From NCBI GenBank assembly GCA_964252035.1, contig OZ176201.1: a DNA stretch of 64,000 nucleotides; one strand, written 5' to 3'. The position numbers were made by a program, and so were the translations under genes. The notes beneath the pieces were generated by a model, which had not been told where the DNA came from, ran no database searches, and worked only from the letters and a program-made list of their open reading frames with translations. This DNA is from Podarcis erhardii (lineage: Eukaryota). Of the stretch, positions 850-35,766 are shown in pieces (position 1 is the first letter of the stretch; every line of letters begins with the position of its first letter).

Positions 850-1063
850 CGAGCAACGAGTTTTGCTTCCCTCCTCCTTCCTCCAGTCCTTTCGTCCTGC
901 CTGGAGCTGCCATGGAAACGGAATAAAGCCTCTTGCACTGAGTACAGTGTGGTGTGCAGGCTTAATGCACAAGCAAAGGAGAGGGTCTGGGAGAGGAAGA
1001 TCCTTGCAGACAGGAGAGAAAAGAGCAGAGGTTGTGCATGAAGAGTTCTAGAACCGCCTGCAG
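850..1063 (+). other. Putative non-coding first exon of the LRRC8D-like gene
   Basis: Ends in a strong donor CAG|GTGAGG at 1064 and contains an X-box-like GCTGCCATGGAAAC (906-919). The 5' boundary is a guess. Confidence 0.25.
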
Positions 1064-1489
1064 GTGAGGAATTGATGCCAAATGGGATAAGGAAGTCAGA
1101 GAGGGAGAGAAGGTTGGCATGTAACCCACGACCAGTGTTATAACCACAGCCAAAAAAATGTTTGTGTCTGTGCATGCTAAAACCACCCTTCTAAATGATA
1201 TTTAAGGACAGCCTGCTGCAGATCTAGCAACAGTGAAGTGGTTCTGTTTCAAGGCTAAGTGTCTGGGAGTGCATGTGTTTTGTTGGTGGATGTTTTAGAG
1301 TGCCCCCAAACTGTTTATATTTTGTGGGAGGAATACAAACACATCCTGGAACTTTAGGTTTGCACAATTAAAGTGGATTGCAACCCTCTGTCATCCTAGT
1401 GTCACAAATCCATTTTAAATAAACAACAATGGACTTTTTGCAGTTTGCAAAGTGATGGGGAAATGCATTCAAAAGTGTAGGATGAGTGA

Positions 1490-1570
1490 ATTATTATTAT
1501 TATTATTATTATTATTAATTTATTTATTTTGTACAACACCCTATACTTGCACGTCTAAGGGTGGTTCAAT
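1490..1570 (-). mobile_element. (ATT)n microsatellite plus L2-type LINE 3' tail
   Basis: ATT repeat followed by TTTATTTATTTTGTACAACACCC...TAAGGGTGGTTCA, the typical inverted LINE tail seen repeatedly in this window. Confidence 0.45.
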
Positions 1571-3157
1571 GACACGTAAACACCCTGCACGCAAATAAGG
1601 GTGAATGTAAGATAAATACTCTTTTTCGTATAACTACCCCATAAACAAATCAGAACAAATGCTCAATGAAGATCAGACATTGTCCAACTATTGTGTAAGC
1701 TTTGTGCAAGCATATCAGGATGAATGTTGAATAAACTGGTTCTCTGGAGGAGCCCCGAATATTGTGGACAAACAACAACATTTTCAGCAGCAACAGCCAA
1801 AAGGAATTGGAATCTAAAGCAACAGCTTCTTTCAGAGACACCAGGATTAGATCCTCTCACAAACAACTTTTAGCACAAATGTGCAAATCACTTATTGGTA
1901 TCTCTGCTTTTCAACTTCAAGTAACAATAATTCTTCCATCTACTCAGAGTAGGATATCATTAAGCCTAGGCAATTTCCCACTTGCCTGATCCACTGTAGG
2001 ACGTGGAAGGCAAAGAAGGGGAAATGGAAAGTTGCCTAAACGCCACAGAGTAAACCACCCTCTGTATGGCCTTAAGGCATTTTTCCATCTTTCCGCTTTC
2101 CACAAAGCGAAGTCTGGTTACCGGATCTAAGGAGAAAACTGTGAGTAAGGAAGTGTTGTTGCTATTCATGACTTGGAGATAGGTCTTGCTAGGTGAGCAT
2201 CTCGATAAATGGCTATATGAATTATATTCTTAGAATTTTTTTTTAAAAAAACCGTATTGAATATTTTTCAAGCCACTCCATCTCATTGCAATTATTCTTA
2301 TTCTGTCAATTAGGTATATATATCCTGCTTTCTGCGCCAAAAGCATAATCAAGACAGCATGCAGGATAAAATAATAACAAAAACAAACTAAAATGCAATG
2401 TTAAAAACAATAACAAGGAAGCCACAATAGCAGTAAAAAAGCAGGGTTATTTTTTAAAAAGTAAGAGTCCATAGGTCAGGGGTGGGAAACCTGTGGCTCT
2501 CCAGATGTTGCAGACTCCTCAGTGGCAAAGGTTGATAGGAGCTTGAGGACGCAGCTACATTAGTAAGGAAAAGGTGTTTTATATGCATTATAACACTGTG
2601 ACACCAGATAGCACTGTGGAATTCCGTCTTTAGCCAACATGCTTTCCCGCTATGTTGTTTTACAACGCGTTTTCCTGAAACACTTTTTTAATGTGTCTAG
2701 ATCCAGCCTAAGACCAGTGACAACCGGAGGGCAACAAGCCCCTCCCTGCCCTAGATAATTATTTTTTCACATTTGGAATGGCAGTTCCAACTCAGCATCC
2801 ACAGATGCCCTGCTGCCCACATTGGTGTCCCTGGGCAGGGGAGGACAGATTATGAGTTTTCATCTTTTTCTTTTTTTAAAAAGTAAGGCTCTAGCCTTCC
2901 AGGAAAGTTATGAAGCAAAACATACAGGTACGCTTCTAAGTGATTTCTGCAAGATGGGGGCTGCTGCCTGTCAATGCTTTTAACCAACGAGTGAAGCTGT
3001 GATTGATAAATGTGTTGCTTAGACACCAGGCATTAGGAATCCCTGGGATCCTAAAGAGCTAATGTTTTCCCCTGTCCTTTAGCACACTTTTCCTGTTTCT
3101 GTCTGTCTTATTTCTAGTCTTTGGATTCTCTTTAGTTTGCCCTTCTTTTCCCCGTAG

Positions 3158-3213
3158 CAGCCAGGATGCATCTTCCCTAAGGTCTCTTAGTGTTTACTAA
3201 GGCTACCACCCAG
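3158..3213 (+). other. Putative non-coding 5' UTR exon of the LRRC8D-like gene
   Basis: Pyrimidine tract plus tandem acceptor TAG|CAG (3155-3160) and a consensus donor CAG|GTAAGT at 3214. Confidence 0.35.
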
Positions 3214-3439
3214 GTAAGTGGGTGCAGGATGGCAGCCTAGACTTTGGTTTATGGTTGACACTCAGGAAACAGGAGGTTCTTGTGTCTTTGGCAGCTGTAT
3301 GGCAGGCAGAAACTCAACAGGTTAAGGCAAGCCATTCCTAGTATGGAAAGCCTTGCCATAACTGTACTGTCTCTAAGTTTTGGTTATGCCTGACCACTTT
3401 GTTCATCAATGACAGTGCTATCAATAGTGCCACACAATG

Positions 3440-3680
3440 CCCGCTGTACAACTACCAGGAGAGGAGCATTCAGTGTGGCAGCATCAAAATGATGGAACTC
3501 CCTCCCAATGTGCATTATGCAAGTGCCTTCTGTTTTATAATTTCAAACACATTTCTGTTTAACTAAGCCTTCCTTGAAGTGTGACCAGTTCTGTATTTTA
3601 GTCATTTATCGCTGAACAGTTTTAATGTTTAACTTTTTATATTGTTCCGTGTAACTTTGTATTGCTCACAGTTTAGGTAT
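3440..3680 (+). mobile_element. Old L2-like LINE 3' fragment
   Basis: GAGGAGCATTCAGTGTGGCAGC...TGGAACTCCCTCCC...TTTTAATGTTTAACTTTT resembles squamate L2 3' ends; boundaries approximate. Confidence 0.45.
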
Positions 3681-3802
3681 ATAGAGAGAGAGAGAAAAAG
3701 AGAGAGAGAGAGCACTAGCTAAATGTGCTAAACAAGCAGACTTTGTTTCAGTGCAATAGCCAAGGATGTTACTCAATTCCCACTTACCATTTGCTTCTAG
3801 TG

Positions 3803-4969
3803 ATGTTTAACCTGACAGAAGTGACCTTCCTCGGTGATGCCCACACTCGGTTCCAGACTCTAAAGCCTTGGTGGGATGTCCTGATGGACTACTTGGTAGT
3901 AGCGATGCTGATGGTCTCTCTCCTCTCAGGTACTCTGCTGATTTCTATTGACCATATGACCTGCTTGCCTCTGAATTACAAGCTAAATGAGACCACAGCA
4001 GCTATGCTCAAGCCTGGAGCTATGGACAGTGCCACCACCAGGGAAGAGTTTTCTACTGAGAACAGTGGACGCCCAATCAACCTTGACTACCAGCAGTACC
4101 TGTACATAAACCATGTCTGCTATCAGAATGCTTTGCCTTGGTTCTCCAAGTATTTTCCTTACCTAGCACTTGTCAACTCACTGATTTTAATGGCAAGCAG
4201 CAACTTCTGGTTCAGGTACCCTAAGACGTCCTCAAAGATCGAACACTTCTTATCCATCCTCATGAAATGCTTCGAGTCACCTTGGACCATCAAGGCCGTC
4301 TCTGAAATGGTCTGCCAGAATTCCCTAGACCTACCCAAAACCACGGATACTAGAGGGTGTCAAGAACAATTTATTTCCCCTTCATCCTCTCCTATCCTTG
4401 ACTGGAAGGAGAGGGAGCAGGGCCGGGCACTCTTTGAGAAGATCTGCAGATTCAGGGCACATGTTGAAGGTGCCAGCTTGATTTATATGGTCTACATGGG
4501 ACAAACAATCTTCAAAGTTGCCAAGATCCTAACTGTGCTGGGCTACACCTCCAACTGCATAGGAGCCATCTCCTTTGAACATGTTTGCTGGCTGGACACA
4601 GAGAACCTCACCGGCTACTCTGTTTTCCTCTGTAATCACAGCTTGGCTTTCATTCTGCAGAAGTTGATGGTGACCTACCTGTTCTTGGTATTCCTCTATG
4701 GGGTGGTGGGGGCTTACCCACTGGTGTGGCTGCTGCGGCAGCCGCTGCAGAAGTATTCCTTTAAGCAAATGCGAGAAGACAGTCACTTTCTTGGCATCCC
4801 AGATGTCTACAACGACTTTGCTTTCCTCCTGCACATGGCTGATCAGTGCGACCAACTATACTCCTGGCGGTTTGCCATCTTCCTCTCAGCCATGAGCAAG
4901 AGCTCTTTGCTGGATGTGGGCCTTGAACACAAGGCAAGTACTGAAGGGCTGCAGCTGCATGTGCATTGA
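3803..4969 (+). CDS. LRRC8-family volume-regulated anion channel subunit, LRRC8D-like paralogue; pannexin-like TM domain only, LRR domain lost (388 aa)
   Basis: Acceptor TTGCTTCTAG at 3800, ATG at 3803. MFNLTEV..LKPWWDVLMDYL, CYQNALPWFSKYFPYLAL, KCFESPW, AISFEHVC, DFAFLLHM and DQLYS.RF match LRRC8 motifs. The MF.L.EV start, CFESPW, AISFEHVC and DQ.DQLYS are D-type rather than A/C/E-type. The stop at 4967-4969 falls just before the LRRs. Confidence 0.9.
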   Translation: MFNLTEVTFLGDAHTRFQTLKPWWDVLMDYLVVAMLMVSLLSGTLLISIDHMTCLPLNYKLNETTAAMLKPGAMDSATTREEFSTENSGRPINLDYQQYLYINHVCYQNALPWFSKYFPYLALVNSLILMASSNFWFRYPKTSSKIEHFLSILMKCFESPWTIKAVSEMVCQNSLDLPKTTDTRGCQEQFISPSSSPILDWKEREQGRALFEKICRFRAHVEGASLIYMVYMGQTIFKVAKILTVLGYTSNCIGAISFEHVCWLDTENLTGYSVFLCNHSLAFILQKLMVTYLFLVFLYGVVGAYPLVWLLRQPLQKYSFKQMREDSHFLGIPDVYNDFAFLLHMADQCDQLYSWRFAIFLSAMSKSSLLDVGLEHKASTEGLQLHVH

Positions 4970-5245
4970 TACTCAAGGGCATCAGAGAACTAAGGCTTCA
5001 CAAGCTGCCAGGCTATCTAGGGCCCTCTTCTGTGAAATGGAAGTCCTGAAGCTTGCAAACAGTCCCAGCCAGAAAAATAGGTATACTAACCTTTCTCAAT
5101 CCGCATTGGTCAAGATGGGCCCCGCTGACCTAAGAAGGCCCACAGTATTCCACATCACATTTCCTGACATTACAACCTGGGGTTGTCTCTCTCAGGGGTC
5201 TCCACCAGTATCTCTCTAGCAACTTTGGCAAGATGAAAGATGCAC
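4958..5245 (+). pseudogene. Frameshifted remnant of the LRRC8D-like LRR-coding region
   Basis: Alternating frames give CIDTQGHQ / ELRLHKLPG / ALFCEMEVLKL / YTNL / FHITFPDITTW / VVSLRGLHQYLSSN, colinear with LRRC8D ISRNAQDKQ-ELHLFMLSG-AVFDLTDLDVLKL-MTNL-LHVKFTDVAEIPAW-VYLLKNLRELYLIGN as recalled. Confidence 0.75.
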
Positions 5246-5314
5246 TGTTCAGACCTGTCCTTGTTGGGCTGGGATTATGAATATGGATTTCATATGGATA
5301 TGAATATAGAAGAA

Positions 5315-5497
5315 GGGGTACAGCTCAATAGTTAAGCATGGGCTTTGTATGCAAAAGATCCTGGGTTCAATTGTTGGCATCTCCAGTTAGGGCTAGGAAA
5401 GGCTCCTGTCTGAAACCATGGAGAACTGCAGCCGGTCAGTAATACTGACCTAGACAGATCAATAGTCTGATCCAGTTTAAGGAGCCTCTGATATTCT
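5315..5497 (+). mobile_element. tRNA-derived squamate SINE (Squam2-like)
   Basis: tRNA-like head (AGCTCAATAGTTAAGCATG...CCTGGGTTCAA) followed by GGCATCTCCAGTTAGGGCT...GAGAACTGCAGCCGGTCAG; related copies at ~55385-55510 (+) and ~58373-58530 (-). Confidence 0.7.
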
Positions 5498-5591
5498 GAT
5501 TAACTGAGGGCTGAAGATAAGGCAAATTCACAACTGGATCCTTTAACTTTCGTTTCTGTTTTAATGCAGTAGTTTTTATTAGCTGCTCTGC

Positions 5592-5597
5592 AATAAA
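5592..5597 (+). terminator. Candidate polyadenylation signal of the LRRC8D-like transcript
   Basis: AATAAA about 620 nt after the stop, followed by a U/GU-rich stretch. Confidence 0.35.
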
Positions 5598-7912: not shown

Positions 7913-8464
7913 GCACCAGACCCTTAAAAGTCAGCAGTTCACACTTTAGTTGGGAAACAGATCCGCAGCAACTCTAAGGAATATAAACCCAGCTCCTTCG
8001 ACTCCCAGACCTGTACTCTGTTACACTGGATGTCCCTGCAAACATTCTATTATGGGTACTCCACAATACCAAGAAATAGACAACCTTATAAAAAACTTAG
8101 CAAACTGTGATTCCCAGGGGCCTTTCATGAGGTTGTAGCTGGTTCCATTGGTTCCGTATCTGCGCTTCCTAGTTTCATATTTGATTCAACAGGTCGGACC
8201 TAGCAGAAGCTAGTGCGACAGCTCCCACTAGTGCAATGCCCTGCAGTGCAATGCATCCTGCTCCGGAGTGTGGGGAGAACCCCCAGAATAGTGCAGGCGG
8301 GGGGTTGGGGAGAGAAAGACGGGAGAAAAGGCGGCATATAAATGCAACAAGTACACAAATTATAAAGAAGCACAAAGGAAACCCAAGCGCAGGCAGGAAA
8401 AAATGCTCTTCCATATTTGGAGCAGTTCAGCTCCGGCTGGTCTTCAAGTGTGAGAGGTACGTGC

Positions 8465-8611
8465 CATAGAATCACAGAACTGTAGAGTTCGATCCAGAGG
8501 GTCATCTTCTACTCCAACCCCTGCAGTAATACTGTATTTTGCTCCCCGCGGAACTTGCACCCAGGACCCTGAGATTAAGAGCCTCAGGTTCTATTGACTG
8601 AGCAACCGGGC
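8465..8611 (-). mobile_element. Squam3-like SINE with tRNA-Lys(CTT)-derived head
   Basis: Reverse complement begins GCCCGGTTGCTCAGTCAATAGAACCTGAGGCTCTTAATCTCAGGGTCCTGGG (tRNA-Lys-like) and ends in the CR1-type tail ...CTCTACAGTTCTGTGATTCTATG. Confidence 0.75.
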
Positions 8612-8969
8612 AGCATCTTCTAACAGCCCTCCGACCCGTCATGACTCCCAGACATGCTCCCTAGTCCCCATCAAAGCTGAGTGGAGATGCACGAATATTG
8701 GCGAGGAGAACGTCCAAAATATCATTGGCGGCGCTGATACTGAGCTCGGGCAGCGTTTTGGTGCCCTCGCGCATGCGCGAGCGGGGAAAAGCCGCGAGGC
8801 AAAACAAGCACAGCGGGCAAAAGTGAAGCCGTGCCTTTGCGGTGGGCGGAGGAGGAGGATGATAATATGGTGGCCTGGTTGGTCCTTTCGGCGCGTGCGC
8901 ACTGCGGTGTTTGTGTATTCTGGCTGCGCGGTGGCGGCAGCGTCGGCGGCTCCGGGGGAGGGGGGGAAG

Positions 8970-35766
<26,797 letters not shown>

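Follow-up and report, generated by a model that had tools for sequence, protein, structure and literature searches.

Squamates probably possess a functional gene for an LRRC8 subunit that lacks the LRR domain and that alters volume-regulated anion channels (VRAC) from within LRRC8A-containing hexamers, raising their activity more likely than lowering it. The gene was recognized in a 64,000-nucleotide stretch of Podarcis erhardii DNA (assembly GCA_964252035.1, contig OZ176201.1), here called the window, in which the sole LRRC8-type sequence is an open reading frame (ORF) of 388 codons plus TGA at 3803-4969 on the + strand. The ORF was listed as 3725-4969 (+), with the conserved ATG at 3803 and the TGA at 4967-4969. 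Judged by its sequence, the encoded protein is a genuine LRRC8 pore subunit without the second defining feature of the family, the LRR domain: the PF12534 pore domain, E6 and the cysteines are present, and the C-terminal LRRs (~10-17 repeats) are absent.

We evaluated the completeness of the pore domain from the ORF listing, Pfam, phmmer and a structure model. The Pfam family Pannexin_like (PF12534) matched the window ORF with an E value of 3.3e-111 and 372 bits, relative to a cut-off of 25; no other Pfam family matched it at E <= 0.01, and the pannexin/innexin family model was likewise unmatched. In a phmmer search of the PDB the best match was LRRC8D (E 3e-121), with LRRC8A (7e-103) and LRRC8C (3e-95) behind it, and the HMMER alignment to LRRC8D fell into three blocks because EL1 and IL1 of the window ORF are much shorter. 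The protein has a pore-lining N-terminal segment (with E6), all four TM segments (TM1-TM4), an extracellular subdomain that carries the cysteines, and intracellular helices. In 39 aligned sequences E6 was near-invariant and C54, C106, C262 and C277 were invariant. An AlphaFold model built from 39 aligned sequences was of moderate confidence, with a mean pLDDT of 64.7, with values of 70-91 in the TM helices and low values in the loops and termini, and it gave a target-normalized TM-score of 0.81 against the LRRC8D chain 9dx7_E. The first-pass annotation of this DNA had claimed an intact pore ORF of 388 codons, which the ORF listing, PF12534 and the LRRC8D match confirmed, and the residues that it had named (M-F-N-L-T-E6, MTCLP, NHVCYQ, EHVCWL and VFLCNH) were all found. 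Its placement of the ORF end at the pore/LRR boundary also proved correct, as homology continued in frame up to the stop (LLDVGLEHKASTEGLQLHVH before the stop, against LREISLNHEWTFEKLRQHVS in LRRC8D).

Residue 96 of the window protein, a tyrosine encoded at 4088-4090 (+), aligned to position 144 of the LRRC8D chain within a gap-free block of the HMMER alignment, which places it at the extracellular constriction, or selectivity filter, where the LRRC8D equivalent is F143/F144. The filter residues of the known paralogues are R103 in LRRC8A, L105 in LRRC8C, F143 in LRRC8D and L96 in LRRC8E (PMC12182595, Table 1). Tyrosine was common to the aligned LRRC8D-like and squamate sequences, the sole exception being a histidine in Hemicordylus. 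At the other end of the protein, alignment across squamates defined a variable C-terminal tail (residues 360-388; 4880-4966, +), in which conservation stopped near LLDV (residues 370-373) and the sites of the stops varied by lineage.

The segment that follows the stop, at 4970-5225 (+; ~260 nt, the 3' end being approximate), aligned to LRR1-3 of the intact turtle orthologue with seven frame-breaking indels and stops, and this decayed remnant is probably 3' UTR now. The earlier description of at least four frameshifts after the stop was therefore right in that the LRR remnant is frame-broken, but its number was too low, as seven were counted against turtle. The remaining LRRs (~270 codons) are deleted from the window gene. 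We detected no further LRR homology within 7 kb downstream in the window or in nine other squamate loci, and tblastn with either the ORF or the LRR half of a lungfish protein gave no sign of further LRRC8 fragments in the window. A candidate poly(A) signal at 5592-5597 (+) is the first and only AATAAA/ATTAAA between the stop and 7000. Just after the LRR remnant, a repeat-like segment at 5290-5580 matched Rhineura at a non-collinear distance (78%); a tRNA-derived SINE reading of 5316-5490, made by eye, was discarded, as ARAGORN detected no tRNA in the segment. In P. raffonei the LRR remnant contains (GATA)n and other inserted sequence, which the window lacks.

The same single-exon ORF, at lengths of 379-432 codons, was kept in ten independent squamate loci taken from assemblies and read-set contigs (a gecko, two skinks, lacertids, an amphisbaenian, two iguanians and two snakes), of which the nine besides the window were translated from raw DNA and not from annotation. 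These nine ORFs all start with MF(T/N)L(T/S)EV and stop within ~70 codons of the FLSAMS motif, most of them within 30, at TGA, TAA or TAG in differing codons. Pannexin-only proteins named 'LRRC8D-like', 359-432 aa long, came up across squamates in a protein search limited to lengths of 213-679 aa (Podarcis raffonei, Rhineura, Pogona, Phrynocephalus, Sceloporus, Anolis sagrei, Elgaria, Hemicordylus, Lerista, Sphaerodactylus and Python), the P. raffonei protein being 98% identical to that of the window. Annotated proteins of similar length were found in about six more squamate families, and partial database models in Varanus (264 aa) and Salvator (155 aa); the annotated start in Lerista lies too far downstream, with the true ATG at L007:9920. 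A gecko-like contig (L012; Logan SRR13336339) carried a 5-nt deletion at a CTACT/CTACT direct repeat at codon 268, in EL2/TM4, downstream of which the original frame was open and conserved; this deletion may reflect an error, polymorphism or recent loss. On the sequence of these loci, the loss of the LRRs is a fixed evolutionary state and not a defect of one genome.

Selection on the pore half was estimated from 358 gap-free core codons of the ten squamates. The NG86 dN/dS had a median of 0.17 over 45 pairs (range 0.09-0.42), close pairs giving 0.21 (Python and the second snake) and 0.20 (the two skinks), and dS between squamate families and lineages reached 0.7-1.1. Under the GY+F3X4 codon model omega was 0.265 (lnL -5510.1), relative to lnL -5695.8 with omega = 1 (2ΔlnL = 371). 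The first-pass annotation had predicted a dN/dS below 1 for the pore domain, and both the median and the maximum likelihood omega agreed with it. All core indels in the ten loci were multiples of three. Compared with Rhineura, the window has 89% identity in the core, where the only two indels measure 9 nt and 3 nt; 76% at the 3' end of the intron, where none of the six indels is a multiple of three; and 83% in the tail and LRR remnant, two 10-nt indels included. Of the two parts of the gene, the LRR remnant alone thus bears the marks of a pseudogene, as the pore ORF showed an omega of 0.17-0.27 and no disruption in ten loci. As far as selection goes, the proposal in the first-pass annotation of a selected LRR-less subunit was strongly supported by omega, the intact ORFs and the frame-keeping indels.

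The LRR-less protein nonetheless evolves about five times faster than squamate LRRC8D (tree path between Podarcis and Rhineura of 0.28 vs 0.056). Of the alignment columns in which 24 full-length LRRC8D and D-like proteins show at least 90% conservation, squamates retain 134 and have switched 15, a switch being counted where at least 85% of 14 squamates carry the same new residue. The radical switches lie after TM4 (E321K, K336Y, Y349C and K355W) and in the IL1 helix (G204R and A207G), in intracellular helices that connect to the LRR domain in full-length LRRC8 channels. The intracellular subdomain that follows TM4 is an activation hotspot of LRRC8 (PMC13586329), and the switches after TM4 in the squamate protein are compensatory-looking.

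Upstream of the coding exon, blastn conservation in seven squamates and the donor CTGCAG/GTGAGG delimited a putative non-coding exon 1 at 906-1063 (+), namely the window and Rhineura, Lerista, Sphaerodactylus, Phrynocephalus, Anolis and Python, in each of which the block precedes the ORF. The putative intron 1, of ~2.7 kb (1064-3800, +), ends with a polypyrimidine tract and an AG at 3799-3800, and this acceptor (ttctag/NN ATG) lies 2 nt before the ATG in 10/10 squamate loci and in turtle. Translation across the inferred exon 1-exon 2 junction gave RVLEPPAV/MFNL in the window and RVPEQPAV/MFNL, peptides that resemble the N-terminal extensions in the annotated proteins of Elgaria (MRRVPRLPVMFTL) and Hemicordylus (MKSTRLPAVMFTL) and in a Crotalus fusion model (..DWLPAVMFAL). 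Because of this resemblance, the annotation pipelines appear to have used the same splice, and a splice shared by database models would lend indirect support to transcription of the LRR-less gene. Logan contigs did not serve as transcripts, as the two compared (L009 and L010) have intron sequence upstream of the ATG and are therefore genomic. The exon 1 block also holds an invariant, Kozak-like GCTGCCATGG (906-930 in the window; also in L001 and L003-L007), after which a four-codon frame is closed by TAA or TAG in six of seven species (METE, MGTA, METV or METN before the stop); a conserved minimal uORF is one possible reading of this short frame, a promoter motif another. The Crotalus model (P0194, C. 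horridus, 1209 aa) fuses LRRC8E to the LRR-less ORF via the same splice acceptor, which is probably an annotation artefact and could hint at read-through transcription.

The gene in the window is not LRRC8D. It is a distinct LRRC8D-like paralogue, which falls in a separate clade, has a shorter EL1 and IL1, and lies beside LRRC8E. In a tree of pore domains (43 rows, LG+C20) the squamate ORFs were monophyletic (100/100) and joined the turtle sequence (95/94), and squamates and turtle together nested in a 100/99 clade otherwise made up of full-length proteins of the LRRC8D-like type (sharks and rays, coelacanth, gar, lungfish, caecilians and axolotl). True LRRC8D fell apart from these in a group (82/89) that has shark, chimaera, coelacanth and tetrapod sequences of its own and also takes in the teleost 'Db' sequences. 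This topology therefore makes the window gene an old gnathostome paralogue of LRRC8D, on a long squamate stem branch of 0.74 changes per site. Two origins of the ORF that would derive it from LRRC8D were ruled out: a retrocopy, by the intron with its conserved acceptor 2 nt before the ATG, the ancient syntenic locus and the separate clade, and gene conversion keeping the ORF open, by the monophyly of the squamate clade and its identity of only ~50% to squamate LRRC8D. In the same data Protopterus had two LRRC8D-like copies (P0002 and P0192; 72% identical) on one 1.97-Gb record, and a Chiloscyllium protein named 'LRRC8D-like' (P0011) and lamprey sequences fell outside the D and D-like clades on long branches; the LRRC8 family may hold further unnamed lineages.

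The neighbourhood of the gene was the same in Phrynocephalus, Podarcis, Lerista and Caretta, in the order of an LRRC8 with LRRs (~796-802 aa), the gene discussed here, and a kinase gene. The upstream neighbour is LRRC8E-type, according to the Crotalus fusion model. The first coding exon of the downstream kinase lies at 8970 to ~9080 (+), as placed by homology to the start of a 435-439 aa Pkinase gene at six other loci; it sits within a GC-rich island (8000-10000, 56% GC), and its DNA is 82-90% identical from gecko to turtle. We take this kinase to be MAP2K7-type, from its N-terminus, and the human order at 19p13.2 is LRRC8E, MAP2K7, TGFBR3L. We know of no LRRC8D-like gene in mammals at a locus of the 19p13.2 type, and none of the protein database matches was a mammalian LRRC8D-like member. 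Nor was there a bird, crocodilian or tuatara D-like protein among these matches, which is weak evidence for absence.

To place the loss of the LRRs on the tree, as the first-pass annotation had suggested, a shared stop codon was considered and rejected as a dating marker. As stops differ between squamate lineages, the dating rests on the common end of the LRR remnant and on the intact turtle genes. This end is common to gecko, skink, lacertid and amphisbaenian (..CTCTCTGGCAAC...GCAAGATGAAAGA, about LRR3); iguanians and snakes have another, shorter tail, with an AATAAA at the stop in Phrynocephalus and two snakes. Among turtles, Chelydra has an intact orthologue of 791 codons (L011:10001-12376), and full-length proteins of ~791 aa were found in Emys, Chrysemys, Gopherus, Dermochelys, Emydura and Carettochelys. 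With turtles mostly full-length and the remnant end common to four squamate lineages, the loss maps to the squamate stem, and on these comparisons the truncation dates to the time after the turtle split and before the crown-squamate radiation. Squamate dates put it at roughly 200 My or more.

One group of turtles departs from this pattern. In Caretta caretta (L008, 10001-12420) the orthologue has 1-nt indels that are confined to the LRR half (codons 412, 466 and 566), next to an intact pore ORF (459 aa), and dN/dS against Chelydra was 0.30 in the pore and 0.61 in the LRR part. The hawksbill model is flagged LOW QUALITY PROTEIN, and the turtle protein P0013 has the same frameshifted stretch and stop, whereas full-length forms occur in the leatherback and in seven further turtle genera. 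The Caretta-type indels may represent a second independent LRR loss at the same boundary, or an early pseudogene.

Taken together, these observations show that on the squamate stem a premature stop at the pore/LRR boundary and the deletion of most of the LRR domain left the pore half, which purifying selection has maintained since, with a short EL1, a short IL1, the filter tyrosine and fixed changes in the C-terminal intracellular helices. For the mechanism we propose the following model. The LRR-less protein probably enters LRRC8A-containing hexamers as one or two subunits. As it has no LRR domain with which to pack against adjacent subunits, it would make the closed state looser, which would alter volume-regulated anion channels in their basal activity, their swelling sensitivity and their permeation, with raised or constitutive activity likelier than inhibition.

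This model draws on truncated and mutated LRRC8 proteins described elsewhere. A human de novo LRRC8C frameshift (L400I, six further residues and a stop) loses the LRR domain, yet its product folds and multimerizes, and together with LRRC8A it gives isotonic currents, a dominant gain of function that is pathogenic (PMC11729881). An LRRC8C construct 21 residues shorter formed no oligomers, and one extending to residue 419 assembled and gave weak currents (PMC11729881). In LRRC8A, mutations of the equivalent residues V392 and L402 produce strong basal activity (PMC13586329). We aligned the squamate proteins to LRRC8C by counting from a primer sequence (V390 in RFAVFLSEVSENKL400; PMC11729881), which placed the conserved end of the squamate motif RFAIFLSAMS..SLLDV at the equivalent of residues 400-403 and the window stop at the equivalent of residue 419. 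The first-pass annotation had suggested a modulator, a dominant-negative or altered permeation as possible roles. By analogy, the LRRC8C truncation work points towards activation over dominant-negative action; however, as the window stop corresponds to the weak 419 construct, the effect may go in either direction.

Two rival explanations deny that the ORF is a gene in its own right, and we regard both as highly improbable. It might be a unitary pseudogene in decay, with a pore ORF left open by chance or with frameshifts that are assembly errors, and the destroyed LRR part and the frameshift in the pore of L012 fit such a history. Against it stand the values of omega (0.17-0.27 at a dS of 0.7-1.1, with omega = 1 rejected at 2ΔlnL 371), the ten independent loci with an intact ORF and indels in multiples of three, the translation of these ORFs from raw loci that no annotation had corrected, and the exclusion of gene conversion by monophyly and ~50% identity to LRRC8D. 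Low omega, frame-keeping indels and intact loci together therefore exclude neutral decay and chance survival of the ORF, and assembly error, which the first-pass annotation had named as a way in which it could fail, is excluded because the ORF is intact in ten independent loci. The ORF might also belong, as a 3' portion, to transcripts that read through from LRRC8E, and the Crotalus horridus model does join the two via the same acceptor. NCBI models in more than ten species nevertheless make it a separate gene, it has its own conserved exon with a donor beyond the end of LRRC8E, and a second pore domain behind an LRR domain would make no topological sense.

Two further explanations accept the gene and differ from our model in how its product acts. 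A homomeric, LRRC8A-independent large-pore channel, pannexin-like and with gating unrelated to swelling, is suggested by the architecture of four TM helices with no LRR domain, by the homo-oligomers that LRRC8C pore-only constructs form (PMC11729881), and by the filter tyrosine, which by analogy with F143 of LRRC8D suggests a wide pore (PMC12182595). We consider this channel unlikely: LRRC8A is obligatory for the assembly and trafficking of the other paralogues (PMC12182595), and the squamate IL1 is strongly shortened, when it is an LRRC8A-specific IL1 stretch that, once inserted, suffices for functional homomers of LRRC8C and LRRC8E. Quite unlikely, in our judgement, is a selected negative regulator that would co-assemble and lower channel activity or retain LRRC8 subunits, as a dominant-negative or decoy. 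The compromised channels of LRRC8C constructs ending at 379 or 419, the latter equivalent to the window stop, agree with inhibition, and the ebouriffe truncation of LRRC8A is cited there as a related case (PMC11729881). However, the conserved part of the squamate protein ends near the equivalent of residues 400-403, like the gain-of-function variant, and the tails beyond it are unconserved; moreover, a dominant-negative mechanism was excluded for the truncation studied (PMC11729881).

Our preferred reading thus remains an LRR-less subunit that modifies LRRC8A-containing hexamers, and we extend it tentatively. A fixed pore-only subunit may free VRAC in part from gating by the LRRs, with constitutive or otherwise different activity or with changed osmolyte permeation; the LRRs may have been cut twice, the second time in cheloniids; and the gene would add a sixth paralogue to the family. 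If this is true, squamates possess an adapted natural equivalent of the gain-of-function truncation known from human LRRC8C. LRR gating of VRAC has so far been studied via engineered or pathogenic truncations, and the squamate subunit is a ready-made, evolution-tested construct for structure-function work. The sequences also show that the vertebrate LRRC8 family has a sixth, unnamed paralogue, LRRC8D-like and beside LRRC8E. A review tabulates five LRRC8 paralogues, for human and mouse (PMC12182595), and our full-text literature searches found no paper on a sixth paralogue or a natural LRR-less form. The question that this raises is what squamates would gain from it in osmolyte handling, cell-volume control or the transport of signalling molecules.

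Four known systems bear comparison with the squamate gene. LRRC8D shares with the window protein the MF.L.EV N-terminus, four TM helices, the extracellular cysteines and an aromatic filter residue, as well as a single coding exon behind a 5' UTR intron. It differs in that the D-like proteins form a sister clade (100/99) at another locus, the squamate LRR-less gene adjoining LRRC8E, and identity is ~50%; in the squamate protein EL1 is ~48 and IL1 ~38 residues shorter, the filter residue is Tyr and not Phe, and there is no LRR domain. The full-length LRRC8D-like paralogue, which carries an automatic annotation name only, is the orthologue by tree and synteny (turtle and squamates) and shares the filter tyrosine, but it has 790-836 aa with a complete LRR domain, whereas the squamate form ends at the boundary. 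Pannexins also have four TM helices, a large-pore oligomer fold and no LRR domain, and they share a remote ancestry with LRRC8 (Abascal and Zardoya 2012, as cited in PMC6679542); the squamate protein nevertheless does not belong to them by sequence, and its likeness to them is secondary, via domain loss. The truncated human LRRC8C is likewise an LRRC8 subunit reduced to its pore and cut at the same helix, and conservation in squamates ends at the equivalent of its residues 400-403. It is, however, a dominant de novo pathogenic variant of LRRC8C, whereas the squamate gene is another paralogue in which the truncation is fixed and has had ~200 My to adapt.
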